A DNA stretch of 64,000 bases from the NCBI GenBank assembly GCA_002269645.1, contig NIVC01000073.1, positions 558,001 through 622,000 of the forward strand. The letters are read 5' to 3'. Positions within the stretch are counted from its first letter, which is position 1. Each line of letters starts with the position of its first letter. The position numbers and the translations under genes are program-made. Below, in pieces: positions 669 to 62,863 of this stretch. The notes beneath the pieces were generated by a model. That model saw only the letters and a list, made by a program, of their open reading frames with translations. It did not search any database and had not been told where the DNA came from. Source of the DNA: Macrostomum lignano. Its lineage: Eukaryota.

Positions 669-15521
<14,853 letters not shown>

Positions 15522-22316: not shown

Positions 22317-29251
<6,935 letters not shown>

Positions 29252-35800: not shown

Positions 35801-38800
35801 GGCGATTCTTCAGGTAGGGTTCAGGTGTGATTCTGCAGGTAGGGTTCAGGTTTTCTAAAAAGCACTTTTAAAGGCTGTACGCATTTGTCCCAGCTGAACT
35901 GCACACTGCGATCAGTGCAATTGAGTAAACAAAGAGGAACAAAGACTCGTAAATAATTTCGTCATGTTATGACTGCTGCAAGCACGAGAAAAACACAGCT
36001 TCTGGAGCTGATGCGCTTGTTTAGCTTTTGCAGCAGCTTCGAGCATGACAGATTAGTGACATGATCAATGATTTATTGAGCTTCTTGAGGGCGATTTAGT
36101 GCGGCTATTAAATGGGCAGGGGGCCAATTATGGAGGTCAATTAGGGAAGGGGTCAATTAGAGAGGGGGTCAGTTAGGGAAGTCAATTAGGGACGGTTAAC
36201 TAGAGGGGTCAATTACTTCATAGAAAGTGTAGATTGATTGGGGGTCAACAAGGGATGATAAAAGGTAAACTAGGGACAGTTCGATAAGGGAGGTGGTCAA
36301 TTAGAGGGTGTCAATTAGAGGGTGTCAATTAGAGGGGTCAATTAGGGGTCAATTAAGGAGAGGGCCAATTAGAGGGGTCTCGATTGGGGAGGGTAAATTA
36401 GAAAGGAAGGGGTCAATTAGAGAGGGAGGGTCAATTAGAGAGGGAGGGTCAATTAGAGAGGGAGGGTCAATTAGAGAGGGAGGGTCAATTAGAGAGGGAG
36501 GGTCAATTAGAGAGGGATCGATTAGAGGGGGTCAATTAGGAAGGTGTGGCTCGTATAGTTAGGGGTCAACTAGGATTTAGTGAAGAGAACACACAACTCA
36601 CACATCAAAATGAACTCGCATCGAACAGTGCCCAGTTCCAAATAGATTTTGCAATTTTGCCATCGTCTCAGATCGACTACCAGATTGAGCCAGCAGGTCA
36701 TTCAACAACGCCTCAGTCACTTCGTCCATGGAAGTCGACAGTCCGCCTTGTTGCAGTCGAAACTCCAATATTGACGCCGGAACCGACTCTCGAGAATAGG
36801 ACGACAAAGAATTACAAGCGTAGCCTTTAGAGCAGGCTGTGAGGACAGAGTGGGAGCTACGATTGGCTAATACGCAGAATCTACCAGCAGCTGCCAGACT
36901 GGCAGAGGCTGATGAATACACCAGCCTGTTGGATGGTGTCTGGTCGACACCGAGCCACATGGTGACAGAGTTGCTACCGGCTGATGATGCTGCTGTTGTT
37001 GCTAGGGGAATTGGAGAGCCAGTTTTCGCGTCGAGAATTCGACCGCATGCCACTGGGGAGTGGGGGTTTGGAAAACAGGATTAATAGCAGAGATTGAGAA
37101 AACCATCAATTCATTTACGTGCTACAACTTTAGATTTCAAGGCACGGACTCAAACTTTTACACAAGTTGTCAAGATAATGAAGCTGAGGAGTCTGGCCCA
37201 GCAACTGAGGATCTGAAAGTCTGGCCCAGCAATTGAGATCTGGGAGGCTGGCCCAGCAATTGAGGATCTGAAAGTCTGGCCCAGCAATTGAGGATCTGGG
37301 AGGCTGGCCCAGCAACTGACACTCTGGGAGGCTGGCCCAGCAATTGAGATCTGGGAGGCTGGCCCAGCAACTGACACTGGGAGGCTGGCCCAGCAACTGA
37401 CACTCTGGGAGGCTGGCACAGCAGCAGACACTCTTGGAGGCTGGCACAGCAGCAGACACTCTGGGAGGCTGGCACAGCAACAGACACTCTGGGAGGCTGG
37501 CACAGCAGCAGACACTCTGGGAGGCTGGCACAGCAACTAAGTAATTTGATGCACTATTTAAATTAAGTAGTATGCTAGACTTATTATTGTATTTATAAAG
37601 GGTCAGTGGATTACCGTATCGCTTGTAGAAGTTGGTCAGAACATTTAACAGCGCCAGCTGATTGTCTCTGTACAGGCCGGGCAGACTACCAGCAGCCGGT
37701 GTAGAACAGCTGTTTAATCGGAGCGACATCTGCGAAAAATTTATTGTGAAATTCAATTAATAAATATAATTTTACTGAGGACTGCATTGAGGATCTGGGA
37801 TCACAGAATTATATTGAGGATCTGTGGGACTCTATTGAGGATCTGGGGATTCTATTGAGATCTGGGGATTCTATTGAGATCTGAGGATTCTATTGGGGAT
37901 CTGGGGATTCTATTGAGATCTGGGGATTCTATTGAGGATCTGGGGATTCTATTGAGATCTGGGGATTCTATCGAGATCTGGGGATTCTATTGAGGATCTG
38001 GGGATTCTATTGAGAATCTGGGGATTCTATTGAGGATCTGGGGATTCTATTGAGGATCTGGGGATTCTATTAGGGATCCGGGGATTCTATTGAGGATCTG
38101 GGGATTCTATTGAGATCTGAGGATTCTATTGAGATCTGGGGATTCTATAGAGGATCTGGGGATTTTATTGAGGATCTGGGGATTCTATTGAGATCTGGGA
38201 TCTGGGGATTCCATTGAGATTTGGGATCTGGGGATTCTATTGAGGATTTGGGATCTGGGGATTCTATTGAGATCTGGGATCTGGGGATTCTATTGAGATC
38301 TGGGATCTGGAGATTCTATTGAAATCTGGGATCTGGGGATTCTATTGAGATCTGGGATCTGGAGATTTTATTGAGGATTTGGGATCTGGGGATTCTATTG
38401 AGGATCTGGGATCTGGGGATTCTATTGAGGATATGGGGATTCTATTGAGGATCTGGGGATTCTATTGAGATCTGGGGATTCTATTGAGATCTGGTGATTT
38501 TATTGGGGATCTGGGGATTCTATTGAGGATCTGGGGATTCTATTGAGATCTGGGATCTGGGGATTCTATTGAGACCTGGAATCTGGGGATTCTATTGAGG
38601 ATTTGGGATCTTGGGATTCTATTGACGATTTGGGATCTGGGGATTTTATTGACGATCTGGGATCTGGGGATTCTATTGAGATCTGGGATCTGGGGATTCT
38701 TTTGAGATCTGGGATCTGGAGATTCGATTGAGGATTTGGGATCTGGGGATTCTATTGAGGATTTGGGATCTGGGGATTCTATTGACGATTTGGGATCTGG

Positions 38801-44800: not shown

Positions 44801-47800
44801 AACGGAGAAAAGGCACAAACCTGGCCTATGCGATCCAGGCAACTGGCCGGAAAACTCAATAACCCACAGTTCTCGATTTTGAACAGATTTTCCAATCGAA
44901 TAAAGGCGAGTCACGCTTGGACAAGCTGAATGAATTCTGTGCAGGTAGGCCGTCAGAGCGTCGTAATTATGGTGCCTGGAGGAAATCCGATTAGTAACGA
45001 TTATTAAGTCAGTATTTGAATATAATACTTAAATTTCGCATTACTGCCCATAGACAGAATTTCTGTTGGCCTCTCTTTAACTGTCTCTCCCTCTACCTGT
45101 CTCCCTCTACCTGTCTCCCTCTACCTGTCTCTCTCTACCTGTCTCTCCCTCTACCTGTCTCTCTCTATCTGTCTCTCTCTACCTGTCTCTCTCCCTCTAC
45201 CTGTCTCTCTCCCTCTACCTGTCTCTCTTCTACCTGTCTCTCCCTCTGCCTGTCTCTCTCCCTCTACCTGTCTCTCTTCTACCTGTCTCTCCCTCTACCT
45301 GTCTCTCTCTACCTGTCTCTCTCTCTACCTGTCTCTCTCTACCTGTCTCTCCCTCTACCTGTCTCTCTCTACCTGTCTCTCTCTACCTGTCTCTCTCTCT
45401 ACCTGTCTCTCTTCTACCTGTCTCTCCCTCTGCCTGTCTCTCTCCCTCTACCTGTCTCTCTTCTACCTGTCTCTCCCTCTACCTGTCTCTCTCTACCTGT
45501 CTCTCTCTACCTGTCTCTCCCTCTGCCTGTCTCTCTTCTACCTGTCTCTCTCTCTCTACCTGTCTCTCTCTACCTGTCTCTCTCTACCTGTCTCTCTCTA
45601 CCTGTCTCTCTTCTACCTGTCTCTCCCTCTGCCTGTCTCTCTCCCTCTACCTGTCCCTCTTCTACCTGTCTCTCCCTCTACCTGTCTCTCTCTACCTGTC
45701 TCTCTCTACCTGTCTCTCCCTCTGCCTGTCTCTCTTCTACCTGTCTCTCTCCCTCTACCTGTCTCTCTCCCTCTACCTGTCATTCTCTACCTACATCTCT
45801 ATCTCTATAAAATAAAAAACAGTAAGCAAACTCACACAAGCGACTTGCTATCAACTGGAACATAGTCTTTGAACACTTTCCGTTCTCGATCTGATCGCAT
45901 TTGATTTGTAAATTTGACAAGCCTCAATATTGGCGAAGATTCGTTCCGCGGGTACTGATCGCCGACACTAAGAATTGAGAAGGCGGATAAAAAACCTATC
46001 AGCAGCATAGCAACTAGTATGTCTCGTCAGCTAATATGTCATCGTTAGTACTCGTAATTCAAAAACATTTTAATTTGAAAATCAGACAAATGCTTATTAT
46101 TAATTCATACTGAAGCATAGATAGTCGCTATACCAGTCATTCTCGTAATCTACTTTGTCATAATATTTAAAAAGCGAAGGACTTACAGACTCTAGATAAA
46201 GTCTGGTATAGTAGTACAATTATGGAAAACAACATATAAGCGAAACTCGATATCAGACAAATGCCTCATTGAAATTTCATAACTGGCACAAACTGAAATT
46301 TGCACCTGTCAATCTCGTCATCTATTCTGTCATCATTAGCGAGTTTATATAAATACTAACTATTCCCTACATTAGAGTCTCGTTCTCAGACAAATGCCTC
46401 ATTAAGATCACGGAGCAGACACTGATTATGCCTGTCAGTTCGTCATCTAAATTGTCATCACTGCTCACACAATGACCTAAAGCACTCTATGTACTTGATA
46501 AGCTCATAAATCATATAAATCTAAGATATAAACTCAGGACTCAGGGCTCAGACAAATGCCTCATTAAATTTCACTAATTGGCACAAACTACTCGAGTTTG
46601 CACCTGTCAATCTCGTCATCTATTGTCATCACAGCGAGTCCGCATAGTCACTAACAATGTGCATTGAGCAATCAAGTCTGTAAGCCGGAATTAACATCCA
46701 CCAGCAGCCAGGCAGCTCTGAAGTCAGCGACAGCTGCAGCGGTGTGCTGTTGCCAGCTGGGTTGCTCTGGCACCAGTATTAAACTTGACCGGGCTTGACA
46801 ACTAATTGCATGGCAACTAGCACCCATTGGTCAAGGGATCAAATCTGGTGCCGTGTGCTTATCTAATTGCATGGCAACTAGCACCCATTGGTCAAGGGAT
46901 CAAATCTGGTGCCGTGTGCTTATCTGATTACATGGCAACTAGCACCCATTGGTCAAGGGATCAAATCTGGTGCCGTGTGCTTATCTAATTGCATGGCAAC
47001 TAGCACCCATTGGTCAAGGGATCAAATCTGGTGCCGTGTGTTTATCTGATTGCATGGCAACTAGCACCCATTGGTCAAGGGATCAAATCTGCTGCCGTGT
47101 GTTTATCTGATTGCATGGCAACTAGCACCAATTGGTCAAGGGATCAAATCTGGTGCCATGTGTTTATCTGATTGCATGGCAACTAGCACCCATTGGTCAA
47201 GGGATCAAATCTGGTGCCGTGTGCTTATCTAATTGCATGGCAACTAGCACCCATTGGTCAAGGGATCAAATCTGGTGCCGTGTGCTTATCTGATTGCATG
47301 GCAACTGGCACCCATTGGTCAAGGAATCAAATCTGGTGCCGTGTGCTTATCTAATTGCATGGCAACTAGCACCCATTGGTCAAGGGATCAAATCTGGTGC
47401 CGTGTGTTTATCTGATTGCATGGCAACTAGCACCCATTGGTCAAGGGATCAAATCTGGTGCCGTGTGCTTATCTGATTGCATGGCAACTAGCACCAATTG
47501 GTCAAGGGATCAAATCTAGTGCCGTATCGCATTTACACTGGTACCCGTTAGTTTTTTATTAGAGACAAGGGCTGTGTGCATCATAGCGCACTTTAAGCGA
47601 CATTGTTACACAACGGGCGAGAAGCATTTTGTCTGTTCCGCTGACCCCCCTGAGCAGGCACACAAGCGCGCGGATACGTACGCAGTCACACGCACATGCA
47701 CACACTCACACAGGAGTGTACAGAGGCCCTAACTTATTTATCGTTAGGCATGTACACTTCACTGCGCCTTCGGGTGGCCCTTAATGCAGGCGTTAATTGC

Positions 47801-50800
47801 ACGAGCAGAGCCAAGCCGAGATTTAAATTTAGCTCTAGTAAATCAATGTGACTGCACTTGGAATCGAGCCTGGGCCGCTGGTACATCAGAGCGCCTGTTA
47901 GGCTACGCCCCAGAGCACTAATTATATTGTTGCCGCGTGTTTATCTACTCCTACTCGTCAGATTGCGTGGCAACTAGCACTCATCGGTGCCATGTGCTTA
48001 TGTAATTGAATAACACCCATTGGTCAAAAGGTATTTAAATCTTCAAGTCAGTGAGACATTCAAGGCACTAGCCATAAAAAAGATTGCATCGAAATCCACG
48101 AAGGTCGAAGGCCCTGAATTTTTTGGTGCATTATTAAGACAGAGACAGTAAAGCTGGTGCCTAACTAAGAACTGAAATTATTTAACATTTCAGGTACAAA
48201 ATTAGTCATACGCTTTTTAAACAAAATCTAGACAGCTTGGTGCTATGATGTATTAGGCAGTAAAATCCTGCTATACGAGTAATACGCTCGCACTTAAGAC
48301 TTCATTCAAAATTAGATACACCGATACTTCATTTTCAGGACAGGTAAGGCTTACTTGTCTTACCAGCTCTCTGACTTAGTTTTAAATTGAAAATCAGACA
48401 AATGCCTCATTATTAATTCATTCTCTGACATAGATAGTCGCTATGCCATTCATTCTCGTCATTTATTTTGTCATCATTTTTATAGAACAAGAATTTACAA
48501 ACTCTACAAACTTTAGTGTGTGTAACAATCACACATTAGGAAAATATAATATCGTGACACTCGCTATCAGACAAATGCCTCATTGAAATTTCATAACTGG
48601 CACAAACTGAAATTTGCACCTGTCAATCTCGTCATCTATTCTGTCATCACAAGCGAGCTAATGATAAAAACTGACTAAACTCATAAGCATTATGCAATAA
48701 GGGTCTCGTTCTCAGACAAATGCCTCATTAAGATCACAGAGCAGACACTGATTATGCCTGTCAGTTCGTCATCTAAATTGTCATCACTGCTCACACAATG
48801 ACCCAAAGAACTCTATGTACTTGATAAGCTCATAAATCATATAAATCTAAGATATATACTCAGGACTCAGGGCTCAGACAAATGCCTCATTAAATTTCAC
48901 TGAATGGCACAAACTACTCGAGTTTGCACCTGTCAATCTCGTCATCTATTGTCATCACAGCGAGTCCGCACAGTCACTAACAATGTGCATTGAGCAATCA
49001 AGTCTGTAAGCCGGAATTAACATCCACCAGCAGCCAGGCAGCTCTGAAGTCAGCGACAGCTGCAGCGGTGTGCTGTTGCCAGCTGGGTTGCTCTGGCACC
49101 AGTATTAAACTTGACCGGGCTTGACAACTAATTGCATGGCAACTAGCACCCATTGGTCAAGGGATCAAATCTGGTGCCGTGTGTTTATCTGATTGCATGG
49201 CAACTAGCACCCATTGGTCAAGGGATCAAATCTGGTGCCGTGTGCTTATCTGATTGCATGGCAACTAGCACCCATTGGTCAAGGGATCAAATCTGGTGCC
49301 GTGTGCTTATCTGATTGCATGGCAACTAGAATTTTAAATAGCGTCTTAAATAAAACGAAGACAACTTGATTTTTTAAGCAGTGAATTTGCTGCACTACTT
49401 ATACTGCTTAATTTATCATTCATACTGAAGCGTAGTTTGTTAGTCGCTATGCCAGTCATTCTCGTCATCTATTTGTATAAGTTACATATAGTTAAATAAA
49501 ACACCCGCTTAGCTGTTTCAACAGTTTTTTGAGAAGGGTGCGTGAACACCCCAGCAGGACTAAAAGCAAGACCTGTAAAAAGGCAAATCACCTCCTTGGA
49601 GCCAACAGCCTTCACACCAATCAGAGAGGAGATAGGCTTCACCGATGGTGATCTTGAGTCTATTGAAACACCGATGAAATGAGAACGACAAGCCAACCAT
49701 GTACCGGGTGGGTTGAGGCCCAGGTCAACAACGGTTGCACTGCCCTTTGAACTCCCCAGAGGATGCAGTGGAAAATGGACTGCTGGAGTGCAAAGTAAGG
49801 GAATAAGACTAGTGAAATTGAACACTATGGTCGGTGGTTGGAATGTGGAATCGCTGCGCCAGGCAAGATGGAGGAAATGCTGGCTGAAGAGATGGCCCGT
49901 ATACACTGGAACATCCTTGACATGTCTGAGATGCGTTGGAAAGGAATCGGTGAAGGACTAAGAGACAGGACACAAAGTTTGGTTATTGTGGCGATGACAA
50001 GGAGGACTTTCGTTCATGGAGTTGAATTTCTTGGTTCACAAAACTCGTAAACACCAAACACTCTATCTTGGAATTTATCCCGGTGAATGACAGAATAGTT
50101 GCAATTAAAGTTACGGGAAAATGTGAAAAGAACAATCCCTAAAGGACGTATTTTTGGTGCAATGGGACAATTAGGGAAAGTTAGACTGGGTGATATCAAC
50201 ATTTTTCAACCACAAAACATTCGGAAAGACAAAATGGCACTCAAAAGATGCAAGAGTTCACAATCAATCTGACTAAAAAATCGTTTCGAGCAGACATGCT
50301 ACCGAAGTGAACAGAATAACGTGAATATTCTATAAACCGGACATTATCAGTGACCATGACTGGCTGATGATGCCATTAAAAGTAAAAATGAAGAAAAACA
50401 AATAAGCAGGATGACGAGAACGTGCTTTGACTTAGGCAAGATGAAGGACAAGAGAATCGTTAAAAATCTTCAAGGAGACTCAGCAAAGCCTAACTTGGTA
50501 TCAAATTGAAAATCAGACAAATGCCTCATTATTAATTCATACTCTGGCATAGATAGTCGCTATGCCGTTCATTCTCGTCATTTATTTTGTCATTTTTCAT
50601 AGAACAAAATTTACAAACTTTAGTGTAATAATCACATATTGGGAAACATAAAATTTTGACACTCGCTATCAGACAAATGCCTCATTGAAATTTCATAACT
50701 GGCACAAACTGAAATTTGCACCTGTCAATCTCGTCATCTATTCTGTCATCATTAGCGAGTTTATATAAATACTAACTATTCCCTACACTAGGGTCTCGTT

Positions 50801-53800
50801 CTCAGACAAATGCCTCATTAAGATCACGGAGCAGACACTGATTATGCCTGTCAGTTCGTCATCTAAATTGTCATCACTGCTCACACAATGACCCAAAGAA
50901 CTCTATGTACTTGGTAAGCTCATAAATCATATAAATCTAAGATATATACTCAGGACTCAGGGCTCAGACAAATGCCTCATTAAATTTCACTAATTGGCAC
51001 AAACTACTCGAGTTTGCACCTGTCAATCTCGTCATCTATTGTCATCACAGCGAGTCCGCACAGTCACTAACAATGTGCATTGAGCAATCAAGTCTGTAAG
51101 CCAGAATTAACATCCACCAGCAGCCAGGCAGCTCTGAAGTCAGCGACAGCTGCAGCGGTGTGCTGTTGCCAGCTGGGTTGCTCTGGCACCAGTATTAAAC
51201 TTGACCGGGCTTGACAACTAATTGCATGGCAACTAGCACCCATTGGTCAAGTATCAAATCTGGTGCCGTGTGCTTATCTAATTGCATGGCAACTAGCACC
51301 CATTAGTCAAGGGATCAAATCTGGTGCCATGTGTTTATCTGATTGCATGGCAACTAGCACCCATTGGTCAAGGGATCAAATCTGGTGCCGTGTGTTTATC
51401 TGATTGCATGGCAACTAGCACCCATTGGTCAAGGGATCAAATCTGGTGCCGTGTGCTTATCTGATTGCATGGCAGCACCCATTGGTCAAGGGATCAAATC
51501 TGGTGCCGTGTGCTTATCTGATTGCATGGCAACTAGAATTTTAAATAGCGTCTTAAATAAAACGAAGACAACTTGATTTTTTAAGCAGTGAATTTGCTGC
51601 ACTACTTATACTGCTTAATTAATCATTCATACTGAAGCGTAGTTTGTTAGTCGCTATGCCAGTCATTCTCGTCATCTATTTGTATAAGTTACATATAGTG
51701 AAATAAAACACCCGCTTAGCTGTTTCAACAGTTTTTTGAGAAGGGTGCGTGAACACCCCAGCAGGACTAAAAGCAAGACCTGTAAAAAGGCAAATCACCT
51801 CCTTGGAGCCAACAGCCTTCACACCAATCAGAGAGGAGATAGGCTTCACCGATGGTGATCTTGAGTCTATTGAAACACCGATGAAATGAGAACGACAAGC
51901 CAACCATGTACCGGGTGGGTTGAGGCCCAGGTCAACAACGGTTGCACTGCCCTTTGAACTCCCCAGAGGATGCAGTGGAAAATGGACTGCTGGAGTGCAA
52001 AGTAAGGGAATAAGACTAGTGAAATTGAACACTATGGTCGGTGGTTGGAATGTGGAATCGCTGCGCCAGGCAAGATGGAGGAAATGCTGGCTGAAGAGAT
52101 GGCCCGTATACACTGGAACATCCTTGACATGTCTGAGATGCGTTGGAAAGGAATCGGTGAAGGACTAAGAGACAGGACACAAAGTTTGGTTATTGTGGCG
52201 ATGACAAGGAGGACTTTCGTTCATGGAGTTGAATTTCTTGGTTCACAAAACTCGTAAACACCAAACACTCTATCTTGGAATTTATCCCGGTGAATGACAG
52301 AATAGTTGCAATTAAAGTTACGGGAAAATGTGAAAAGAACAATCCCTAAAGGACGTATTTTTGGTGCAATGGGACAATTAGGGAAAGTTAGACTGGGTGA
52401 TATCAACATTTTTCAACCACAAAACATTCGGAAAGACAAAATGGCACTCAAAAGATGCAAGAGTTCACAATCAATCTGACTAAAAAATCGTTTCGAGCAG
52501 ACATGCTACCGAAGTGAACAGAATAACGTGAATATTCTATAAACCGGACATTATCAGTGACCATGACTGGCTGATGATGCCATTAAAAGTAAAAATGAAG
52601 AAAAACAAATAAGCAGGATGACGAGAACGTGCTTTGACTTAGGCAAGATGAAGGACAAGAGAATCGTTAAAAATCTTCAAGGAGACTCAGCAAAGCCTAA
52701 CTTGGTATCAAATTGAAAATCAGACAAATGCCTCATTATTAATTCATACTCTGGCATAGATAGTCGCTATGCCGTTCATTCTCGTCATTTATTTTGTCAT
52801 TTTTCATAGAACAAAATTTACAAACTTTAGTGTAATAATCACATATTGGGAAACATAAAATTTTGACACTCGCTATCAGACAAATGCCTCATTGAAATTT
52901 CATAACTGGCACAAACTGAAATTTGCACCTGTCAATCTCGTCATCTATTCTGTCATCATTAGCGAGTTTATATAAATACTAACTATTCCCTACACTAGGG
53001 TCTCGTTCTCAGACAAATGCCTCATTAAGATCACGGAGCAGACACTGATTATGCCTGTCAGTTCGTCATCTAAATTGTCATCACTGCTCACACAATGACC
53101 CAAAGAACTCTATGTACTTGGTAAGCTCATAAATCATATAAATCTAAGATATATACTCAGGACTCAGGGCTCAGACAAATGCCTCATTAAATTTCACTAA
53201 TTGGCACAAACTACTCGAGTTTGCACCTGTCAATCTCGTCATCTATTGTCATCACAGCGAGTCCGCACAGTCACTAACAATGTGCATTGAGCAATCAAGT
53301 CTGTAAGCCAGAATTAACATCCACCAGCAGCCAGGCAGCTCTGAAGTCAGCGACAGCTGCAGCGGTGTGCTGTTGCCAGCTGGGTTGCTCTGGCACCAGT
53401 ATTAAACTTGACCGGGCTTGACAACTAATTGCATGGCAACTAGCACCCATTGGTCAAGTATCAAATCTGGTGCCGTGTGCTTATCTAATTGCATGGCAAC
53501 TAGCACCCATTAGTCAAGGGATCAAATCTGGTGCCATGTGTTTATCTGATTGCATGGCAACTAGCACCCATTGGTCAAGGGATCAAATCTGGTGCCGTGT
53601 GCTTATCTAATTGCATGGCAACTGGCACCCATTGGTCAAGGGATCAAATCTGGTGCCGTGTGCTTATCTAATTGCATGGCAACTAGCACCTATTGGTCAA
53701 GGGATCAAATCTGGTGCCGTGTGCTTATCTAATTGCATGGCAACTAGCACCTATTGGTCAATAGTCCACCAGTCCAGCTTATCTTTGACATTTCTAGTTA

Positions 53801-54583
53801 GATTGTTAAAGTCTTTATATTAAAAAAAAGACAAACTTTATTCCCAATGGAGGGACAAAAAGAACTTCAGTTGTGCAGCTTCGCTTACCTGACGTCTCGT
53901 CGCAATCTCAGTCCGTATTCATGGTCATCAGCCAGGCCTCCCGAGTTGATAAACTGCCATTGCAAGTAATTAGTCAAATTAAACGCCCGATGCTTCGCTT
54001 TCAACGCGCCGCTTCGATGGCAATTGTCTATGGTAATAATCGATTTAACCTTGCAGCCATTGTCAGCAAGATTGTTAACAAACTGTTCAACTAACTCAGG
54101 CTGTTCGCTTAAATCTTTTTCGCAGGCAAGAATTTGACATATTCGCTTCTTAGTTATGGATTCATAACCGACCAAGTCTAATTGACGCAATGCTTTTAAA
54201 ACGTTTGTATTGTTGCTCCTAGTTGGTAGTAGAAATTCAGCAACAATTTTACTCCTTGTCGATGTTGAAGATGGCAAATTAATAAAGTCTTTTAGTAGCA
54301 CCAGTTGCTTAGCAACTGAACTAGCAGCAGCTTGACTAGTCGCTGCGTAGGTTAATATCAGCATTGGTTTGACTGACACCTGATCAGCGCTATTATCGCT
54401 GATTGATAACCGATAAATATTAACATCTTCGATGTTACTGATTGCGAATCTTGGCTGAGTTGCAACATTTTCAGCTAATAATAACGTCACCTGTGATAGC
54501 CGCAACAACAGAATTGTCAGCATTATAAGCCATCGGTTGCCATGGAAACGGGAAAGACGATTGGCATTTGAATTTGGCAGCAT
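32863..54583 (-). CDS. CPD: Carboxypeptidase D-like multidomain M14B metallocarboxypeptidase, type I membrane protein, about 1517 aa
   Basis: Exons 54583-53889, 45967-45836, 44975-44821, 44235-43902, 43150-43055, 42363-41902, 40500-40127, 39462-38990, 37729-37615, 37052-36602, 35342-34661, 33837-33516, 33125-32863; total 4554 nt, in frame. Domain 1 has [43 protein letters not shown] and FELTLELSC. Three transthyretin-like subdomains ([26 protein letters not shown]), a TM segment and a YSKV tail follow. Linkage of the first exon is inferred. Confidence 0.85.
33170..33480. repeat. 23-bp minisatellite
   Basis: CCCAATCAGCCTCACTTTCAGTG. Confidence 0.92.
34030..34555. repeat. 35-bp minisatellite
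   Basis: ATAATAGGATCACTAATTAAGGGATTAACACCAGA. Confidence 0.9.
35365..35850. repeat. 25-bp minisatellite
   Basis: GGGTTCAGGGGCGATTCTTCAGGTA. Confidence 0.92.
36110..36545. repeat. Degenerate G-rich GGGTCAATTAGA repeat
   Basis: Direct reading. Confidence 0.75.
37185..37540. repeat. 28-bp minisatellite (reverse complement of the 21770 family)
   Basis: CAGCAACTGACACTCTGGGAGGCTGGCC. Confidence 0.9.
37785..38965. repeat. 19-27-bp minisatellite
   Basis: GATCTGGGGATTCTATTGA units. Confidence 0.92.
39560..40105. repeat. About 85-bp degenerate tandem repeat
   Basis: GGGGGTCAAATGACCTCC...AGCAGTTAATAA units. Confidence 0.75.
40560..41870. repeat. 28-bp minisatellite (about 46 copies; same family as 21770 and 37185)
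   Basis: CAGCAACTGA(GGATC/CACTC)TGGGAGGCTGGCC. Confidence 0.95.
42480..42880. repeat. 22-bp minisatellite
   Basis: CAAGGATTGGGTCATAAGAATT. Confidence 0.85.
43230..43790. repeat. 24-bp minisatellite
   Basis: AAGGTCAAACAATCGGAATTTTCC. Confidence 0.85.
44300..44670. repeat. 28-bp minisatellite
   Basis: GGAATTCCCCATCAAGATTGAGTTATTT. Confidence 0.8.
45075..45800. repeat. CT-rich minisatellite (about 16-18 bp)
   Basis: CTACCTGTCTCTCCCT units. Confidence 0.9.
46082..46164 (-). pseudogene. U15-like box C/D snoRNA, type A, degenerate (cassette 1)
   Basis: D box is present, but both guides are mutated (plus strand caaatgcttatt, ctcgtaatct) and the C box reads ATTATGA. Confidence 0.65.
46253..46336 (-). 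ncRNA. SNORD15: U15-like dual-guide box C/D snoRNA, type B (cassette 1)
   Basis: Minus strand: C ATGATGA, guide TAGATGACGAG, D' TTGA, guide GAGGCATTTG, D CTGA, terminal stem. Confidence 0.85.
46386..46461 (-). ncRNA. SNORD15: U15-like box C/D snoRNA, type C (cassette 1)
   Basis: C GTGATGA, guide TTAGATGACGA, D' CTGA, C' GTGATCT, guide GAGGCATTTG, D CTGA. Confidence 0.85.
46548..46632 (-). ncRNA. SNORD15: U15-like box C/D snoRNA, type D (cassette 1)
   Basis: C GTGATGA, guide TAGATGACGAG, D' TTGA, guide GAGGCATTTG, D CTGA. Confidence 0.85.
46804..47525. repeat. 61-bp minisatellite (about 12 copies), cassette 1
   Basis: Unit ATTGCATGGCAACTAGCACCCATTGGTCAAGGGATCAAATCTGGTGCCGTGTGCTTATCT(A/G). 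Confidence 0.92.
47530..47912 (-). mobile_element. Candidate tRNA-derived SINE inserted in a 61-bp repeat array
   Basis: Minus-strand head TGGGGCGTAGCCTAACAGG (A-box-like) ... GGCTCGATTCC (B-box-like, 47870-47860); degenerate 61-bp units resume after it (about 47930-48035). Confidence 0.5.
48394..48477 (-). ncRNA. SNORD15: U15-like box C/D snoRNA, type A (cassette 2)
   Basis: C ATGATGA, D' guide with one mismatch (TAAATGACGAG), D' ATGA, intact D guide and CTGA. Confidence 0.78.
48567..48650 (-). ncRNA. SNORD15: U15-like box C/D snoRNA, type B (cassette 2)
   Basis: All boxes and both guides intact; C GTGATGA. Confidence 0.85.
48712..48787 (-). ncRNA. SNORD15: U15-like box C/D snoRNA, type C (cassette 2)
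   Basis: Same boxes and guides as 46386-46461. Confidence 0.85.
48874..48958 (-). ncRNA. SNORD15: U15-like box C/D snoRNA, type D (cassette 2)
   Basis: Same boxes and guides as 46548-46632. Confidence 0.85.
49130..49330. repeat. 61-bp minisatellite, cassette 2
   Basis: Same unit, about 3 copies. Confidence 0.9.
49820..50450 (+). pseudogene. Decayed RTE-like LINE AP-endonuclease fragment
   Basis: Frameshifted motifs GWNVESL / [20 protein letters not shown] / [14 protein letters not shown] / [14 protein letters not shown] / FDLGKMKD. Confidence 0.72.
50513..50596 (-). pseudogene. U15-like snoRNA, type A, C box damaged (cassette 3)
   Basis: D box and D guide intact; plus strand reads tgtcattttt instead of tgtcatcatttt, so the C box is lost. 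Confidence 0.65.
50669..50752 (-). ncRNA. SNORD15: U15-like box C/D snoRNA, type B (cassette 3)
   Basis: All boxes and guides intact; perfect ACTCGCTA/TAGCGAGT terminal stem. Confidence 0.87.
50802..50877 (-). ncRNA. SNORD15: U15-like box C/D snoRNA, type C (cassette 3)
   Basis: Boxes and guides as in the other type C copies. Confidence 0.85.
50964..51048 (-). ncRNA. SNORD15: U15-like box C/D snoRNA, type D (cassette 3)
   Basis: Boxes and guides as in the other type D copies. Confidence 0.85.
51220..51535. repeat. 61-bp minisatellite, cassette 3
   Basis: Same unit, about 5 copies. Confidence 0.9.
52027..52657 (+). pseudogene. Decayed RTE-like LINE endonuclease fragment (duplicate)
   Basis: Same sequence at +2207. 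Confidence 0.72.
52720..52803 (-). pseudogene. U15-like snoRNA, type A, C box damaged (cassette 4)
   Basis: Copy of 50513-50596 at +2207. Confidence 0.65.
52876..52959 (-). ncRNA. SNORD15: U15-like box C/D snoRNA, type B (cassette 4)
   Basis: Copy of 50669-50752 at +2207. Confidence 0.85.
53009..53084 (-). ncRNA. SNORD15: U15-like box C/D snoRNA, type C (cassette 4)
   Basis: Copy of 50802-50877 at +2207. Confidence 0.85.
53171..53255 (-). ncRNA. SNORD15: U15-like box C/D snoRNA, type D (cassette 4)
   Basis: Copy of 50964-51048 at +2207. Confidence 0.85.
53427..53760. repeat. 61-bp minisatellite, cassette 4
   Basis: Same unit, about 5-6 copies. Confidence 0.9.
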
Positions 54584-55079
54584 GTCCCTTTATGTATTAC
54601 GATGCGTGCATGCAAAAAGCACTCTAGATGGAATGTAGCTCGAAGATATTCTGAAATGTCAAAGTATAAAAAGTAATTGATAGTTCAGAAATTATCATTC
54701 TACAGAAAAGTAACTAACTAAAAAAATTACTATTATTACAGACATCTAATACTAAAAGCTAATGGGACATTTTTATAATTACTGACACTCAATAGTTTTA
54801 AGGCACTCACTGACACCTAACACTTTACAAGTTAAATGTACCCTAAATAATAATAAAAATATAATATGTTCTGTGCTATACTAAAACCGAAATCATTAGT
54901 AAATTAAACAACCCACCATTTGAACGATGATATTAAAATAGCGGCAAATGTCCTTTTACCCGATACAAATGGTATTTTTTATTTATTCATAATAGGAAAA
55001 AGTTTACAAGTCGTTAAAAAAGTCGCTTGAGTAAGAGAAAAATTAACCTTGAAAACTAGATTCATAATAATTTTTGCAA

Positions 55080-55490
55080 CACTGAGGATCTGGGAGGCTT
55101 GCCCAGCAACTGAGGATCTGGGAGGCTTGCCCAGCAACTGAGGATCTGGAAGGCTGGCCCAGCAACTGAGGATCTCGAAGGCTGGCCCAGCAACTGAGGA
55201 TCTGGGAGGCTGGCTCAGCAACTGAGGATCTGGGAGGCTTGCCCAGCAACTGAGGATCTGGGAGGCTGGCTCAGCAACTGAGGATCTGGGAGGCTTGCCC
55301 AGCAACTGAGGATCTGGGAGGCTGGCTCAGCAACTGAGGATCTCGAAGGCTGGCCCAGCAACTGAGGATCTGGGAGGCTGGCTCAGCAACTGAGGATCTG
55401 GGAGGCTTGCCCAGCAACTGAGGATCTGGAAGGCTTGCCCAGCAACTGAGGATCTGGAAAGCTGGCCCAGCAACTGAGGATCTGGAAGAA
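55080..55490. repeat. 28-bp minisatellite (same family as 40560)
   Basis: CAGCAACTGAGGATCTGGGAGGCT(G/T)GC(C/T). Confidence 0.9.
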
Positions 55491-56255
55491 ATACAATTTG
55501 TTTTGCCGTTCAAAGACGTAACAAAGACGTTCTAGTAGACTCCAAATGGATTTTAACTAATTTGCATCAGATTGCATAATAGCTACTACAAAATGGCGCA
55601 AGGCAAAAGTTTTAATATACGTAAATTCGGATCACTTTAGTACAAAAATACTCTAACTACTACTTGTTACTATTAGTAGTACGAGTATTACTAATTGATT
55701 TAAAGTATGCAAGCAATATAAACTGGGACAGCGAAGTTGCACCCGGGTAGCGAGAGTAATAAAATGCGGCAAGCAGAAACACCTACTGGATAATATTTAA
55801 TAAATTGAACAGGTGTGGCAGAGGTACAAAAAGTACAGTTTGTTTACATAAATCTTTATTTAAAAAACTTTGCAAAGTAATGTTTGAAAAAAATTGACGG
55901 TATTATTATAAATAAATGTGAAGACAGCAACGGGTTACTAAAAAGAAATTAATGCCTTACTTCCATACGACACACTTTTACAATAATAGAACTTACATGT
56001 ATAGCCATGTTTATATTATAACTGAATAAATCACAGACTATATTCAACACAAAGACCATTTTTAACACAAAGACCCTATAAAGCACAGACTCCACCCTAC
56101 TCAACACTAAGACCCTACTCAACACAAAGACCCAAGTTATATTCAAAGAAGTGCACCGGGAACCAGGGGAATTTAAAGTTCGCGCATTTAAGTCAGGTCA
56201 ATAAAAAACGGACACAACGAACATGATCAGATAGACTGAGATGCAATCTCGGCAT

Positions 56256-59104
56256 TCAATGAGAGATCTCTGGCACCGGATTCTCGTACAGAGGATCAAA
56301 ATGAAGCAGGAGAAAAGCTACAGCGCCAATCAGAGCCAGGGCTAGAATGCAGTTGAGCAGAGACGGACGAAACCGACTGGGAGCTGCGGCGGCTCCTGGG
56401 GCCGGACGAGCGCCAGACGGCGAGCCCACGTTACCATAGTAACCAGTTCCGGCGTCATTCTCGTGCAACGGGCGTCGGCGATAGGTTTCGCGGAAAACTG
56501 AACCGCCACCGCTGCCGAAGCTGCCATCGTCGGCTGGTGAAGCTCCGGGACGTTGAGGAGGGGAATCGAACCTGCGACCTGCTGGGCTGGATGCGGCAGC
56601 GGCGGCTGCGCCTGCGGCGGAGAATATCGAAGCGTCGCGAGTGCCCGGACTGCGAATAAACAATGGGAAAGACTGGTTGGGCAAAATTACACTGATAAGT
56701 ACTTGTTAGCTAAAGTACACTGACAAAGATTTGTTTGTAAATGTACATAGAAAAAGTCTGAATTGCCCAATGTACACTGACAAAGACTCAATGGCCAATG
56801 TACACTGCCAAAGCCTCAATGGCCAAATATACACTAACAAAGACTCAATGGCCCAATGTACACTGAAAAAGACTCAATGGCCCAATATACACTGACAAAA
56901 AGAATCAATGGTTGAATGTACACTCAAAAAGACTCAATGGCACAATGTACACTCAAAAAGACTCAATGGCACAATGTACACTCAAAAAGACTCAATGGCA
57001 CAATGTACACTGACATACTCAATACTCCAATGTACACCAACAGAAAAAGTTATATCTTTAAATACTTGTTAAGAATCTCAAAAAGCTACCTGTTGTAAAC
57101 TCAAACAAATAGCCAAAACTGAAAATGTTCATAAATAACATTTTTATTCCAGCACCGAAAAAACTTATACATAATAATATAATCGCTGATAACCATTACC
57201 AACTAGAATTTTCCTACCAAATAGCTATAGTGACAGGAACACAGCAGTCACAGATAGTAATGTTGATCGACAAGTCGTACTTTAAATTAGATGGCCTGTG
57301 TGGTTGTTCAATCAGATTCTTTACGTTTTTACTGATAATTAAGGTGAGAAAAGTGCAAAATATTCTACTCTTAAAGTAACAATATTTAAAGACACCAACC
57401 AATTTCCTATATATTATGAGTTTCACACATCCCAAGTAGTAAAGTTGAGTTCAATAAAACAAACGATTTATTACCTTACTGGCTGTCTTCTGGCGCCGTC
57501 TCCGTCACTGACATCGCTTTCGCTAAAAAATACAATAAGTATTATTTATATTTATAACTCTCCATAATAAATCAATAATGGAATGAAAATCCATAGAATA
57601 TACAATAAATTAAGCTTTTGGACTCAGACAAATGCCTCATTAAGATCACTTTATAAAGGCAAAAGTTATGCCTGTATCAGTTCGTCATCTAAATTGTCAT
57701 CATTGTAGTTTAGGCTATTATCAAACATAAAATATCGCGACACTCGCTATCAGACAAATGCCTCATTGAAATTTCATAACTGGCACAAACTGAAATTTGC
57801 ACCTGTCAATCTCGTCATCTATTCTGTCATCATTAGCGAGTTTATATAAATACTAACTATTCCCTACACTAGGGTCTCGTTCTCAGACAAATGCCTCATT
57901 AAGATCACGGAGCAGACCTGATTATGCCTGTCAGTTCGTCATCTAAATTGTCATCACTGCTCACACAATGACCCAAAGAACTCTATGTACTTGGTAAGCT
58001 CATAAATCATTTAAATCTAAGATATATACTCAGGACTCAGGGCTCAGACAAATGCCTCATTAAATTTCACTAATTGGCACAAACTACTCGAGTTTGTACC
58101 TGTCAATCTCGTCATCTATTGTCATCACAGCGAGTCCGCACAGTCACTAACAATGTGCATTGAGCAATCAAGTCTGTAAGCCGGAATTAACATCCACCAG
58201 CAGCCAGGCAGCTCTGAAGTCAGCGACAGCTGCAGCGGTGTGCTGTTGCCAGCTGGGTTGCTCTGGCACCAGCATTAAACTTGACCGGGCTTGACAACTA
58301 ATTGCATGGCAACTAGCACCCATTGGTCAAGGGATCAAATCTGGTGCCGTGTGCTTATCTAATTGCATGGCAACTAGCACCCATTGGTCAAGAGATCAAA
58401 TCTGGTGCCGTGTGCTTATCTAATTGCATGGCAACTAGCACCCATTGGTCAAGGGATCAAATCTGGTGCCATGTGTTTATCTGATTGCATGGCAACTAGC
58501 ACCCATTGGTCAAGGGATCAAATCTGGTGCCATGTGTTTATCTGATTGCATGGCAACTAGCACCCATTGGTCAAGGGATCAAATCTGGTGCCATGTGTTT
58601 ATCTGATTGCATGGCAACTAGCACTTATTGGTGCTAGGGGTCGAATCTGAGTGATTATTCAGCATATTAAGCTGCATGGCAACTAAGCGGACTAAGACTA
58701 GGACTAAGACTTAACCAATGGGATAAAGACAACCCTACTATAATTACTAGTTTAAATCCTGCCTCAAAATCAGACAAATGCCTTATAAAAATTCACATTA
58801 AAAAGCATAGATTTATTTGCTATGCCAATCATACTCGTCATCTATTTTGTCATCATTTTTGAGAGCAGATTTTTTGCACAAAAAGAATCAAATCCTTGAG
58901 TTGTAAATAAAACAACACTTACCTATCTTCAGCTTGGTCGTTGCTGCACACAGACACAAACTGTTGTCCGGAGCGCAGTCTATATAATTTACGACGCATC
59001 AAGTGCCTAGTAGTGTCAGTAACTGGGGGCACATTTGCGTCGCCCATGTGTACAGCAAGTTCATCGCGTAGTTCCGCATCATTTAGTTGATTAATTTCGT
59101 CCAT
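56256..59104 (-). CDS. LEM-domain inner nuclear membrane protein (emerin/LAP2-like), about 207 aa
   Basis: Exons 59104-58923, 57522-57475, 56649-56256; phases are consistent. N-terminal LEM motif (LNDAELRDELAVHMGDANVPPVTDTTRHLMRRKLYRL), low-complexity middle, C-terminal TM segment (LLNCILALALIGAVAFLLLHF). Confidence 0.85.
56770..57010. repeat. About 28-bp minisatellite in LEM intron 2
   Basis: CAATGTACACTCAAAAAGACTCAATGGC. Confidence 0.85.
57624..57703 (-). ncRNA. SNORD15: U15-like box C/D snoRNA, type E (C-like variant; cassette 5, LEM intron 1)
   Basis: C ATGATGA, guide TTAGATGACGA, D' CTGA, C' GTGATCT, guide GAGGCATTTG, D CTGA; the internal spacer differs from type C. Confidence 0.85.
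57750..57833 (-). ncRNA. SNORD15: U15-like box C/D snoRNA, type B (cassette 5)
   Basis: All boxes and guides intact; 8-bp terminal stem. Confidence 0.87.
57883..57957 (-). ncRNA. SNORD15: U15-like box C/D snoRNA, type C (cassette 5)
   Basis: Boxes and guides intact. Confidence 0.85.
58044..58128 (-). ncRNA. SNORD15: U15-like box C/D snoRNA, type D (cassette 5)
   Basis: Boxes and guides intact. Confidence 0.85.
58300..58630. repeat. 61-bp minisatellite, cassette 5
   Basis: Same unit, about 5 copies. Confidence 0.9.
58770..58856 (-). ncRNA. SNORD15: U15-like box C/D snoRNA, type A variant (LEM intron 1)
   Basis: C ATGATGA, guide TAGATGACGAG, D' ATGA, D guide AGGCATTTG, D CTGA; CTCAAAA/TTTTGAG terminal stem. 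Confidence 0.82.
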
Positions 59105-61897: not shown

Positions 61898-62863
61898 ATG
61901 TCTATTGCCAGCAGTCGTGCTTCAATGGCACCACCTGACGATGGTGCTGGAGCAGGAGCTGAGGAACCGGTACTAGGCGAACGTCTTGATCGTCTCGCTG
62001 ATGCACTGGAGCGCCAGCTTGGTATAGGCCAAGTCAGGCAGCATGTCAAGATGGCTAAATACACGCCATCCCAAGACATCCGCACGTGGATCAAAGCCTT
62101 CGATCTTCGCTGCGATACCGAAGACATTCGTGCCTGCCACAGGAAGGCGGAGTTGCTCGCCAACCTTGACGTGCACACGGCGTATGCTTCGGTCTTGCGC
62201 CTGAATTTGCCAGATCATCTGGATTATGAAGAGTTTAAGGAAGCGCTGATTGAGAGATTCTCAAAGAGAGGCGGCTCACAGGAATTCCGAGAAGATTTCC
62301 GCTGCCGAACTCAGCGCAAGAACGAGGACATTGACGAGTTTGCAGATGCTCTCCGCGAACTTGGAGAACTCGCTTATCCTTATCTCTTGCCAGCTCAGCT
62401 CGAATCAGAACTTGTTGATCAGTTCCTGAAAGGTGTCAGAACTACAATTGAGGCGAGAGAACGGCTGTACTGGGGTCGTCCAGAGACTCTACAGGACGCC
62501 AAGTTCGCCTTCAAGCGCATCGAGACAGCGCGTGAGCTTGCTGCCCGCAGTAAAGACGCACCCTGTCGCAGCCTGGGTGGGGACAAAGCTACGGTTCCCC
62601 GACAGGACGATGAGCTTAAGAATCTAATCAGGCATCAGAATGAGGTTCTGCAGAAGCAGCAGCAGATGCTTGAGCAGCTTCTCAAGCAGACGCCAGCCGC
62701 ACCTGTCAGAGATAGGCTGCAAGGCATTGTGTGCCACGAGTGCGGCAAACCAGGCCACAAGAGGCCTGACTGTCCTAAGTTCAAGGCTCAGAAGCCGGGA
62801 AACGTCCGGGCGGGGGTTGCCAACCAGGACCCTCTCCAGGGCCAACCCCCGAAGTCGCACTAA
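61898..62863 (+). CDS. gag: Ty3/Gypsy gag (capsid-like domain + CCHC zinc knuckle)
   Basis: 321-aa ORF with a retrotransposon gag-like core (QRKNEDIDEFADALRELGELAYP..LVDQFLKG) and the knuckle CHECGKPGHKRPDC. Confidence 0.9.
   Translation: MSIASSRASMAPPDDGAGAGAEEPVLGERLDRLADALERQLGIGQVRQHVKMAKYTPSQDIRTWIKAFDLRCDTEDIRACHRKAELLANLDVHTAYASVLRLNLPDHLDYEEFKEALIERFSKRGGSQEFREDFRCRTQRKNEDIDEFADALRELGELAYPYLLPAQLESELVDQFLKGVRTTIEARERLYWGRPETLQDAKFAFKRIETARELAARSKDAPCRSLGGDKATVPRQDDELKNLIRHQNEVLQKQQQMLEQLLKQTPAAPVRDRLQGIVCHECGKPGHKRPDCPKFKAQKPGNVRAGVANQDPLQGQPPKSH

Follow-up and report, generated by a model that had tools for sequence, protein, structure and literature searches.

A predicted array of U15-like box C/D snoRNA genes in two introns of the flatworm Macrostomum lignano

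Why should the introns of two adjacent genes in an animal carry the same small element 21 times? The introns lie in a 64,000-nucleotide stretch of Macrostomum lignano DNA (assembly GCA_002269645.1, Mlig_3_7, contig NIVC01000073.1, positions 558,001 to 622,000; hereafter the window), and the element has the layout of a box C/D small nucleolar RNA (snoRNA). Motif parsing and a covariance model identify 21 full-length units and three fragments on the minus strand, from 58856 to 46082. We consider it quite probable that the units are box C/D snoRNA genes encoded in introns and represent the counterpart, in this flatworm, of U15/SNORD15. The analysis supports the units as putative functional orthologues of U15/SNORD15, which corresponds to yeast snR13 and snR75 together (Rfam clan CL00045).

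Units, guides and predicted 28S targets

The count of 21 had been put forward in a reading of the DNA made before any database search (the sequence-only reading), and both of our methods return it. With one mismatch allowed, TAGATGACGAG has 24 minus-strand matches from 58844 to 46023, where about one is expected in the whole window. GAGGCATTTG has 20 exact minus-strand matches from 58058 to 46258, the expectation of 5.7 for this motif applying to a search with one mismatch allowed, and AGGCATTTGTCTGA, guide 2 joined to the D box, has 20 exact matches and one further match with a single mismatch. The covariance model, R1, scored 20 units at 52-64 bits and unit 21 at 37.5 bits; in the 64-kb window it found no similar units beyond the 21 and the three fragments. 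As R1 was built from 50 unrelated environmental sequences whose source pattern fixed 26 guide and box bases, its high scores largely restate the motifs, and it was therefore used for counting copies and spotting fragments, not as independent proof. Of the outer coordinates given earlier, 46082 coincides with the end of the D box in the last unit, and 58856 with the start of the C box in the first.

On the minus strand the units read, in order, RUGAUGA, 3-5 nt, UAGAUGACGAG(N), NUGA, an internal segment of 23-32 nt, RUGAWNU, 4-6 nt, GAGGCAUUUGU and CUGA, which is the succession of C box, guide, D', C', guide and D box described in the sequence-only reading. The C box is canonical in 18 of 21 units and the D box is CUGA in all 21; the C box is AAAUGAC in units 9 and 13 and UUAUGAC in unit 21. 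The five sequence types recognized earlier are correct, and can be divided further into seven subtypes of three deep families. Types A and C share the D' box UUGA and a hairpin GGUGCAAA.../...UUUGUGCC; types B and D share GACGAA directly before CUGA and the C' box GUGAUCU; and types E, E' and E2 share the D' box AUGA and a hairpin GGCAUAG.../...CUAUGCC. The hairpin between D' and C' is kept in six of the seven subtypes despite its differing sequence (z from -1.9 to -4.5). Terminal stems of 4-8 bp, differing in sequence among types A, C, E' and E, measure 7 bp in A and E', 4-5 bp in E and 8 bp in C, where the stem directly flanks the boxes (z = -3.4). Such stems had been said to occur often, which is true of these four types; type B has a distant 5-bp external stem only, and type D has none. 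The features that characterize the box C/D class, namely C and D boxes, a terminal stem, internal D' and C' boxes and antisense elements of at least 10 nt, are found in the array.

Units and fragments, with covariance-model scores in bits where given:
Unit 1, 58770-58856, minus strand: type E'; C box AUGAUGA, guide 1 UAGAUGACGAG, D' box AUGA, guide 2 AAGGCAUUUGU with the distal base pair lost, D box CUGA; 7-bp terminal stem CUCAAAA/UUUUGAG; 62.1 bits
Unit 2, 58044-58128, minus strand: type A; C box GUGAUGA, D' box UUGA, 10-bp internal hairpin, stem GGACUCG/UGAGUCC; 57.2 bits
Unit 3, 57883-57957, minus strand: type B; D' box CUGA, guide 1 GACGAA shifted by one base; terminal pairing limited to the distant external stem GGGUC/GACCC; 52.3 bits
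Unit 4, 57750-57833, minus strand: type C; 8-bp stem ACUCGCUA/UAGCGAGU beside the boxes, z -3.4; 63.6 bits
Unit 5, 57624-57703, minus strand: type D (B-like); no terminal stem; 56.4 bits
Unit 6, 53171-53255, minus strand: type A; motif parsing and covariance model
Unit 7, 53009-53084, minus strand: type B; motif parsing and covariance model
Unit 8, 52876-52959, minus strand: type C; motif parsing and covariance model
Unit 9, 52720-52803, minus strand: type E; 3-nt C-box deletion (AAAUGACA), G-to-A change in guide 1; 54.2 bits
Unit 10, 50964-51048, minus strand: type A; motif parsing and covariance model
Unit 11, 50802-50877, minus strand: type B; motif parsing and covariance model
Unit 12, 50669-50752, minus strand: type C; motif parsing and covariance model
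Unit 13, 50513-50596, minus strand: type E; C-box deletion as in unit 9
Unit 14, 48874-48958, minus strand: type A; motif parsing and covariance model
Unit 15, 48712-48787, minus strand: type B; motif parsing and covariance model
Unit 16, 48567-48650, minus strand: type C; variant 5' flank, C box GUGAUGA
Unit 17, 48394-48477, minus strand: type E; C box intact, guide 1 UAAAUGACGAG with one A-C target mismatch; 60.8 bits
Unit 18, 46548-46632, minus strand: type A; motif parsing and covariance model
Unit 19, 46386-46461, minus strand: type B; motif parsing and covariance model
Unit 20, 46253-46336, minus strand: type C; one terminal-stem mismatch
Unit 21, 46082-46164, minus strand: type E2; degenerate, C box UUAUGAC, mutations in both guides; 37.5 bits
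Truncated E2-type unit, 51613-51697, minus strand: no C box, guide 2 or D box; 14 bits
Twin of the truncated E2-type unit, 49490-49406, minus strand: covariance model
Short fragment, 46021-46054, minus strand: C box and part of guide 1, just upstream of the 3' splice site; 12.9 bits

Four full-length units carry defects (9, 13, 17 and 21), unit 9 being probably impaired and unit 21 probably a pseudogene; about 17 of the 21 look competent.

The two guides overlap by GAG and are jointly complementary to one contiguous segment, CCAAAUGCCUCGUCAUCUA, in agreement with the earlier claim that both antisense elements cover a single conserved segment of large-subunit (LSU) ribosomal RNA (rRNA). Against the 28S rRNA of other eukaryotes, UAGAUGACGAG pairs over 11 bp with TAGCCAAATGCCTCGTCATCTAATTAG, and GAGGCAUUUG pairs with it over 10 bp, or 12 bp counting one G-U pair. 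TAGCCAAATGCCTCGTCATCTAATTAG is the 28S sequence in PMC12222951 and PMC3024428, and the Drosophila 28S primer GCCTCGTCATCTAATTAGTGACGCGC in PMC3024428 covers the guide target. The target segment is universally conserved 28S sequence of helices 70/71. Under the D+5 rule, the fifth base upstream of a D or D' box marks the target. All 21 units read ...GCAUUUGU directly before CUGA, the fifth base pairs with the third A of CAAAUG, and the predicted target of the D guide is the A equivalent to yeast A2281 and human A3764. In 15 units (A, C, E, E' and E2) GACGAGN precedes NUGA and the fifth base falls at the G of CUCGUC, 7 nt downstream of the predicted A site; the D' guide of the A, C and E types is predicted to target the G equivalent to yeast G2288 and Arabidopsis G2278. 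The guide before D' in the six B and D units, GACGAA, is one base shorter, so its fifth base pairs with the U after that G. Of the two targets assigned in the sequence-only reading, the A thus applies to 21 of 21 units and the G to 15 of 21, the six B/D units predicting the adjacent U instead. In a paralogous locus described below (L003), the D unit reads GACGAG before CUGA, which restores pairing in the shifted register. Because the guides overlap on the target, one small nucleolar ribonucleoprotein cannot use both at once on the same rRNA molecule. The guides of human U15 are presumably the same as those found here (GAUGACGAG before D', GAGGCAUUUGU before D).

The predicted sites are known ones. 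In yeast, snR13 guides A2280/A2281 and snR75 guides G2288, and loss of methylation in this region destabilises 60S subunits (PMC4174444). Arabidopsis U15 guides Am2271 and Gm2278, human U15a guides Am3764, and the U15, snR13 and snR75 families are grouped in Rfam clan CL00045 (PMC3511168, Table 1).

Host introns and conservation across three loci

The sequence-only reading placed the units in introns of two neighbouring non-ribosomal genes, and the spliced LEM protein together with the annotated carboxypeptidase start confirms this.

Host genes and introns:
Host gene 1, 56256-59104, minus strand: LEM-domain tail-anchored protein BOX15_Mlig005543g1, from hand-spliced open reading frames (ORFs) and annotation
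LEM gene exons, 59104-58923, 57522-57475 and 56649-56256, minus strand
LEM intron 1, 58922-57523, minus strand: units 1-5
Host gene 2, exon 1, 53889-54583, minus strand: ends AG/GTAAG, annotated gene start at 54583
Host gene 2, intron 1, 45968-53888, minus strand: 7921 nt, units 6-21 (16 units)
Host gene 2, exon 2, 45838-45967, minus strand: in frame with exon 1 (AG joined to T, Ser)
Peptidase_M14 exons of host gene 2, 44905-44816, 44239-43898, 43206-43054 and 42416-41901, minus strand

The hand-spliced LEM protein is 100% identical over 207 residues to PAA91803.1, annotated on the same contig of the same assembly (NIVC01000073.1, GCA_002269645.1), and the exon boundaries that follow from this match place units 1-5 in intron 1. 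Unit 1 starts 66 nt past the 5' splice site and unit 5 ends 100 nt ahead of the 3' splice site. Host gene 2 is annotated as carboxypeptidase-D-like, with 1517 residues and Peptidase_M14 and CarboxypepD_reg domains; its exon 2 is preceded by a polypyrimidine tract and AG, and is identical in a second paralogous locus (L002). The best match of an M14 exon is an M. lignano protein, identical over long stretches, and exact-sequence look-ups of three window ORFs gave no match. The public annotation has no exons between the units. Each of the two spliceosomal introns holds at least two sense-strand units (5 and 16), the arrangement of an intronic polycistronic cluster.

L002 and L003 are two further loci of the same assembly with the same gene pair, and both keep units E', A, B, C and D in LEM intron 1. 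They allow constraint to be gauged. Between types, boxes and guides are 92% identical, internal segments 54% and flanks 41%. The five repeats inside the window (about 5 variable columns in the snoRNA bodies, 3/166 in a linker described below) are too similar for a test of selection, so the LEM-intron cluster was compared across the three paralogous loci instead.

Variable columns across the window, L002 and L003:
Boxes and guides: 2/223 (0.9%)
Internal segments: 16/147
Non-snoRNA intron: 49/498 (~10%)
LEM exons: 5/230
Carboxypeptidase exon 1: 29/696

The difference between boxes plus guides and non-snoRNA intron is significant when columns are counted (Fisher p ~1e-6) and when events are counted (2/223 vs 30/498, p = 0.0013), and points to purifying selection. 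The guides are thus more conserved than the spacers both between types and between loci, as the sequence-only reading had held. Unit 1 is identical across the three loci, while the adjoining exon 1 has five differences. In L003, LEM exon 1 (9897-10076) has a 1-nt deletion and the annotated product has 172 residues with no LEM domain recorded; the five LEM-intron units are intact there despite this frame-breaking change.

It may nevertheless be asked whether the units are pseudogenes in a decaying, satellite-like higher-order repeat, with one or more working U15 genes elsewhere in the genome. The repeats are 92-99% identical, indicating recent duplication, in a genome extremely rich in tandem repeats, and decay is visible in the truncated units, the C-box deletion of units 9 and 13, the degenerate unit 21, a 1.05-kb insert and a guide mutation in one L003 A copy. 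Set against this, the variability of boxes and guides in the three loci is about a tenth of that of the adjacent intron, and lower than that of a coding exon. The constraint on them and the identity of unit 1 argue against dead repeats, as do the retention of the five-unit LEM-intron cluster in all three loci and the fact that types about 50% different internally retain both guides, the boxes and the hairpin. We regard wholesale decay as very unlikely.

The window also contains other genes and gene parts. Downstream, at 33600-37750 (minus strand), tblastn suggests more carboxypeptidase-D-like repeats, including a second regulatory-like domain, which fits the 1517-residue multi-domain product. 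Upstream of the LEM gene, a 321-amino-acid ORF at 61898-62863 (plus strand) has weak Retrotrans_gag and zinc-knuckle matches and is probably the gag of a long terminal repeat retrotransposon. Genes at 10600-15521 and 23844-28170 (both plus strand) were read from ORF translations only; one has leucine-rich repeats, immunoglobulin-like sequence, a transmembrane segment and a poly-Q tail, and another has adenosylhomocysteinase-like exons.

Repeat structure, copy number and transcription

The 21 copies are five near-identical repeats of one block rather than 21 independent genes.

Repeat features:
Higher-order repeats in carboxypeptidase intron 1, 53761-51537, 51536-49330, 49329-47526 and 47525-46068, minus strand: from self-comparison
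61-bp satellite, 58298-58649, minus strand: 5.8 copies, Tandem Repeats Finder
61-bp satellite, 46805-47525, minus strand: 11.8 copies, Tandem Repeats Finder
61-bp satellite, other arrays, 53425-53761, 51221-51536 and 49131-49329, minus strand
Insert of ~1.05 kb, 51698-52712, repeated at ~50505-49491, minus strand: between the complete E unit and the truncated E2 unit

The 61-bp satellite and a 166-nt linker make up each higher-order repeat together with units A, B, C and E; in repeats 1 and 2 there are, in addition, the 1.05-kb insert and a truncated E2 unit. The satellite, in 3.3-11.8 copies per array, lies ahead of every A-B-C group; its monomer contains the CCAAT-box-like GACCAATGG, and a conserved G+C-rich linker of ~166 nt follows each array (e.g. 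53427-53263). The stretches 53747-51342 and 51536-49131 recur at a period of 2211 bp and share 99.3% identity across 2410 bp, the other higher-order repeats are 92-97% identical, and the LEM-intron block is ~97% identical to the long-intron repeats. The copy number is the result of recent tandem duplication of a ~2.2-kb block.

Tandem repeats are common throughout the window: the 85 rows given by Tandem Repeats Finder come down to roughly 50 separate arrays, with a period of 14-61 bp, and many of these lie in introns of the window's genes. The insert was suspected to be a retrotransposon fragment, an idea we dropped as its short ORFs on both strands have no Pfam match. The linker was considered as a structured RNA and rejected: its fold is no better than shuffled sequence (z = -0.11), and inspection by eye showed no convincing H/ACA layout. 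A transfer RNA (tRNA)-like stretch at 47930-47860 (minus strand; ggggcgtagcctaacaggcg...ggctcgattcc) lies inside repeat 3, in a unique segment of 850 bp; as ARAGORN called no tRNA genes, it was not taken as an intact tRNA, and it may be the remnant of a short interspersed nuclear element.

Repeats so alike might have been multiplied or collapsed by long-read assembly, making the count of 21 too high or too low. Two of them are 99.3% identical over 2.4 kb, and L002 has one long-intron repeat to the window's four, with a 3' part identical to the window's last repeat. Yet the window's repeats differ at diagnostic positions and in satellite copy number, the independent contig of L003 has at least three long-intron repeats, and even the smallest version of the array holds 9 units. 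A count seriously distorted by assembly therefore seems hardly likely.

How the copies arose is suggested by a chimaeric unit at L003 21865-21970, with a type C 5' half (flank, C box and spacer) and a type A 3' half, which is evidence of unequal recombination between units. In the window, the B-C spacer of the LEM intron is closer to the window's long-intron copies than to the LEM introns of L002 and L003, which points to exchange between the LEM and long-intron arrays. The simplest explanation for the high copy number is unequal crossing-over in a partly polyploid genome rich in repeats; the extra copies may be tolerated, or used as extra dosage.

If the units are intron-encoded snoRNA genes as we favour, the host pre-mRNAs would be transcribed by RNA polymerase II, and Snu13, Nop58, Nop56 and fibrillarin would assemble on each C/D motif. 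End trimming of a debranched intron cannot by itself free internal units, so cuts between units would be needed; the layout suggests endonucleolytic cuts in the 45-170-nt spacers followed by exonucleolytic trimming. The mature RNAs, of roughly 85-95 nt, would then direct 2'-O-methylation of 28S rRNA at two sites, or at three if the B/D guides are active.

Transcription may be arranged differently if each higher-order repeat is its own polycistronic unit nested in the host intron, with a promoter in the 61-bp satellite (GACCAATGG) or the 166-nt linker, as in plants, yeast and trypanosomatids; the units would still be real snoRNA genes. Satellite and linker precede every A unit (5 of 5 copies in the window, and also in L002 and L003), the linker varies in 3 of 166 columns among the five window copies against 6 columns in the A-B spacer of ~70-80 nt, and the units of L003 are intact where the LEM frame is broken. 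On the other hand, a CCAAT pentamer is expected by chance in about 1 in 10 monomers of 61 bp, the window has roughly 50 unrelated minisatellites among which this satellite may be a mere passenger, and the linker is not significantly structured. Moreover, the satellite comes downstream of unit 1, and the distances of units 1 and 5 from the splice sites, 66 and 100 nt, are those expected of intron-processed snoRNAs. Given the above, we judge such self-transcribed blocks improbable, if less so than decay or assembly error.

A bolder combination can be drawn from the B and D units, which have the best internal boxes (CUGA and UGAUCU) together with the D' guide shifted by one base. In this reading, the ancient methylated G would be the work of types A, C and E, types B and D would add a lineage-specific methylated U next to it in helix 71, and each satellite-linker-snoRNA block would be an autonomous polycistronic gene in a host intron. 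To our knowledge, autonomous polycistronic snoRNA genes nested in host introns are otherwise a matter of plants and protists rather than animals. We offer this combination as a speculation that is more doubtful than likely by a wide measure.

Several observations weigh against reading the array as a set of working U15-type snoRNA genes. A search of the whole window with Rfam at gathering thresholds gave 0 matches; neither SNORD15 nor snR75, the models suggested for checking the array, reached its gathering score, so the designation U15-like rests on shared targets and architecture rather than on a match to a curated model. Units 9, 13 and 21 and the three fragments are defective, and types B and D lack a box-proximal terminal stem. 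As the repeats are near-identical, most copies carry no independent evidence of function. Guide pairing was scored on the 28S rRNA of other eukaryotes, conservation of the target in M. lignano being assumed, and the maturation and activity of the units are predictions from the DNA. Carboxypeptidase exon 1 has no homologue outside the species in a search of 5.8 billion proteins, and its coding status rests on the public annotation and a consistent reading frame.

Known relatives and known snoRNA clusters

In a permissive Rfam search, all sub-threshold matches that span a whole unit are snoRNA families with the same two guides.

Best permissive match and gathering score, by family:
TtnuCD10: 31.2 bits, gathering 85
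plasmodium_snoR21: 30.3 bits, gathering 90
snoMe28S-Am2589: 29.2 bits, gathering 37
DdR15: 26.2 bits, gathering 70
snR75: 24.1 bits, gathering 40
SNOR75: 21.0 bits, gathering 50
SNORD15: 20.2 bits, gathering 75, with only the 3' part aligned

Matches to mir-191, mir-251, mir-297, HSR-omega, IsrM and salivarius-1 in the same search were set aside as chance-level. For Tetrahymena TtnuCD10, Plasmodium snoR21, Dictyostelium DdR15, plant SNOR75 and Drosophila Me28S-Am2589, guides and boxes align end to end with the units at 21-31 bits (gathering scores of 37-90), and internal regions are unaligned. When metagenome contigs were scanned for the exact dual-guide pattern, 83 stretches from varied eukaryotes were recovered; these, too, have a C box 4-9 nt upstream, an internal hairpin that varies, a C' box and complementary termini. 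Tandem arrays of U15-type units occur in the environmental contigs L024, L032/L057, L071, L075, L077 and L038; in L024 (Ga0126342_10019434), positions 1-1700 hold 12 head-to-tail units, mostly at a ~130-nt period and running up to the contig end. At two places a box C/D-like unit of another kind is interposed in the L024 array.

Hardly any flatworm snoRNAs have been annotated. In Schistosoma, a search by homology gave no clear snoRNA homologue except U3 (PMC2770079), and our literature search found no study of Macrostomum snoRNAs. The locus thus offers a confident orthologue, as predicted from its guides, of one of the oldest methylation guides, and it illustrates the expansion, homogenisation and decay of a snoRNA array in a repeat-rich, partly polyploid animal genome. 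Two of its features can be tested: the possible new methylated U at the shifted B/D guides, and a multi-snoRNA intron whose units would need cuts between them for release.

Like the array, U15/SNORD15 and snR13 plus snR75 are box C/D guides for an A and a G 7 nt apart in LSU helices 70/71, and in Arabidopsis U15, as here, both sites are guided by one RNA (PMC3511168). The units differ from SNORD15 in their unrelated internal sequence and in being much shorter than the 146-position model, and from U15 in having UUGA or AUGA as the D' box in types A, C and E. In vertebrates, U15 occurs as single copies in introns of RPS3, whereas the hosts here are LEM-domain and carboxypeptidase genes with 5 and 16 copies per intron.

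Clusters in single introns also have precedents, among them the intronic snoRNA clusters of rice (Liang et al. 2002) and the box H/ACA clusters of Drosophila (Huang et al. 2004), as cited in passages of PMC3089462 and PMC5932544. In these, as in the array, several sense-strand snoRNAs lie in one intron, which implies processing beyond splicing alone; the Drosophila clusters are H/ACA and the array is C/D. The rice and Drosophila clusters reportedly mix different snoRNAs, whereas the array repeats a single target specificity, and at 16 copies per intron its number is much higher. SNORD115/SNORD116 and SNORD113/114 share with it tens of near-identical box C/D copies made by tandem duplication of a few-kb unit. 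In those mammalian arrays each copy has its own intron between non-coding exons, is imprinted and has no rRNA target; the flatworm array does not belong to that type, having many copies per intron of a protein-coding gene and a canonical rRNA target. The environmental arrays of U15-type units have much shorter spacers and no satellite-and-linker module.

The cluster had been called unusual for an animal, which is true but overstated, as multi-snoRNA introns and tandem arrays are known elsewhere and the copy number stems from segmental duplications that arose recently in a genome very rich in repeats. The novelty lies in the phylum and the hosts, in how many box C/D copies with the same target share one animal intron, in the varying copy number of the paralogous loci (one long-intron repeat in L002, four in the window and at least three in L003) and in the shifted guide of one type. 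Since the RNA family, its targets and intronic and tandem clusters were already established, the array extends known snoRNA biology rather than changing it.

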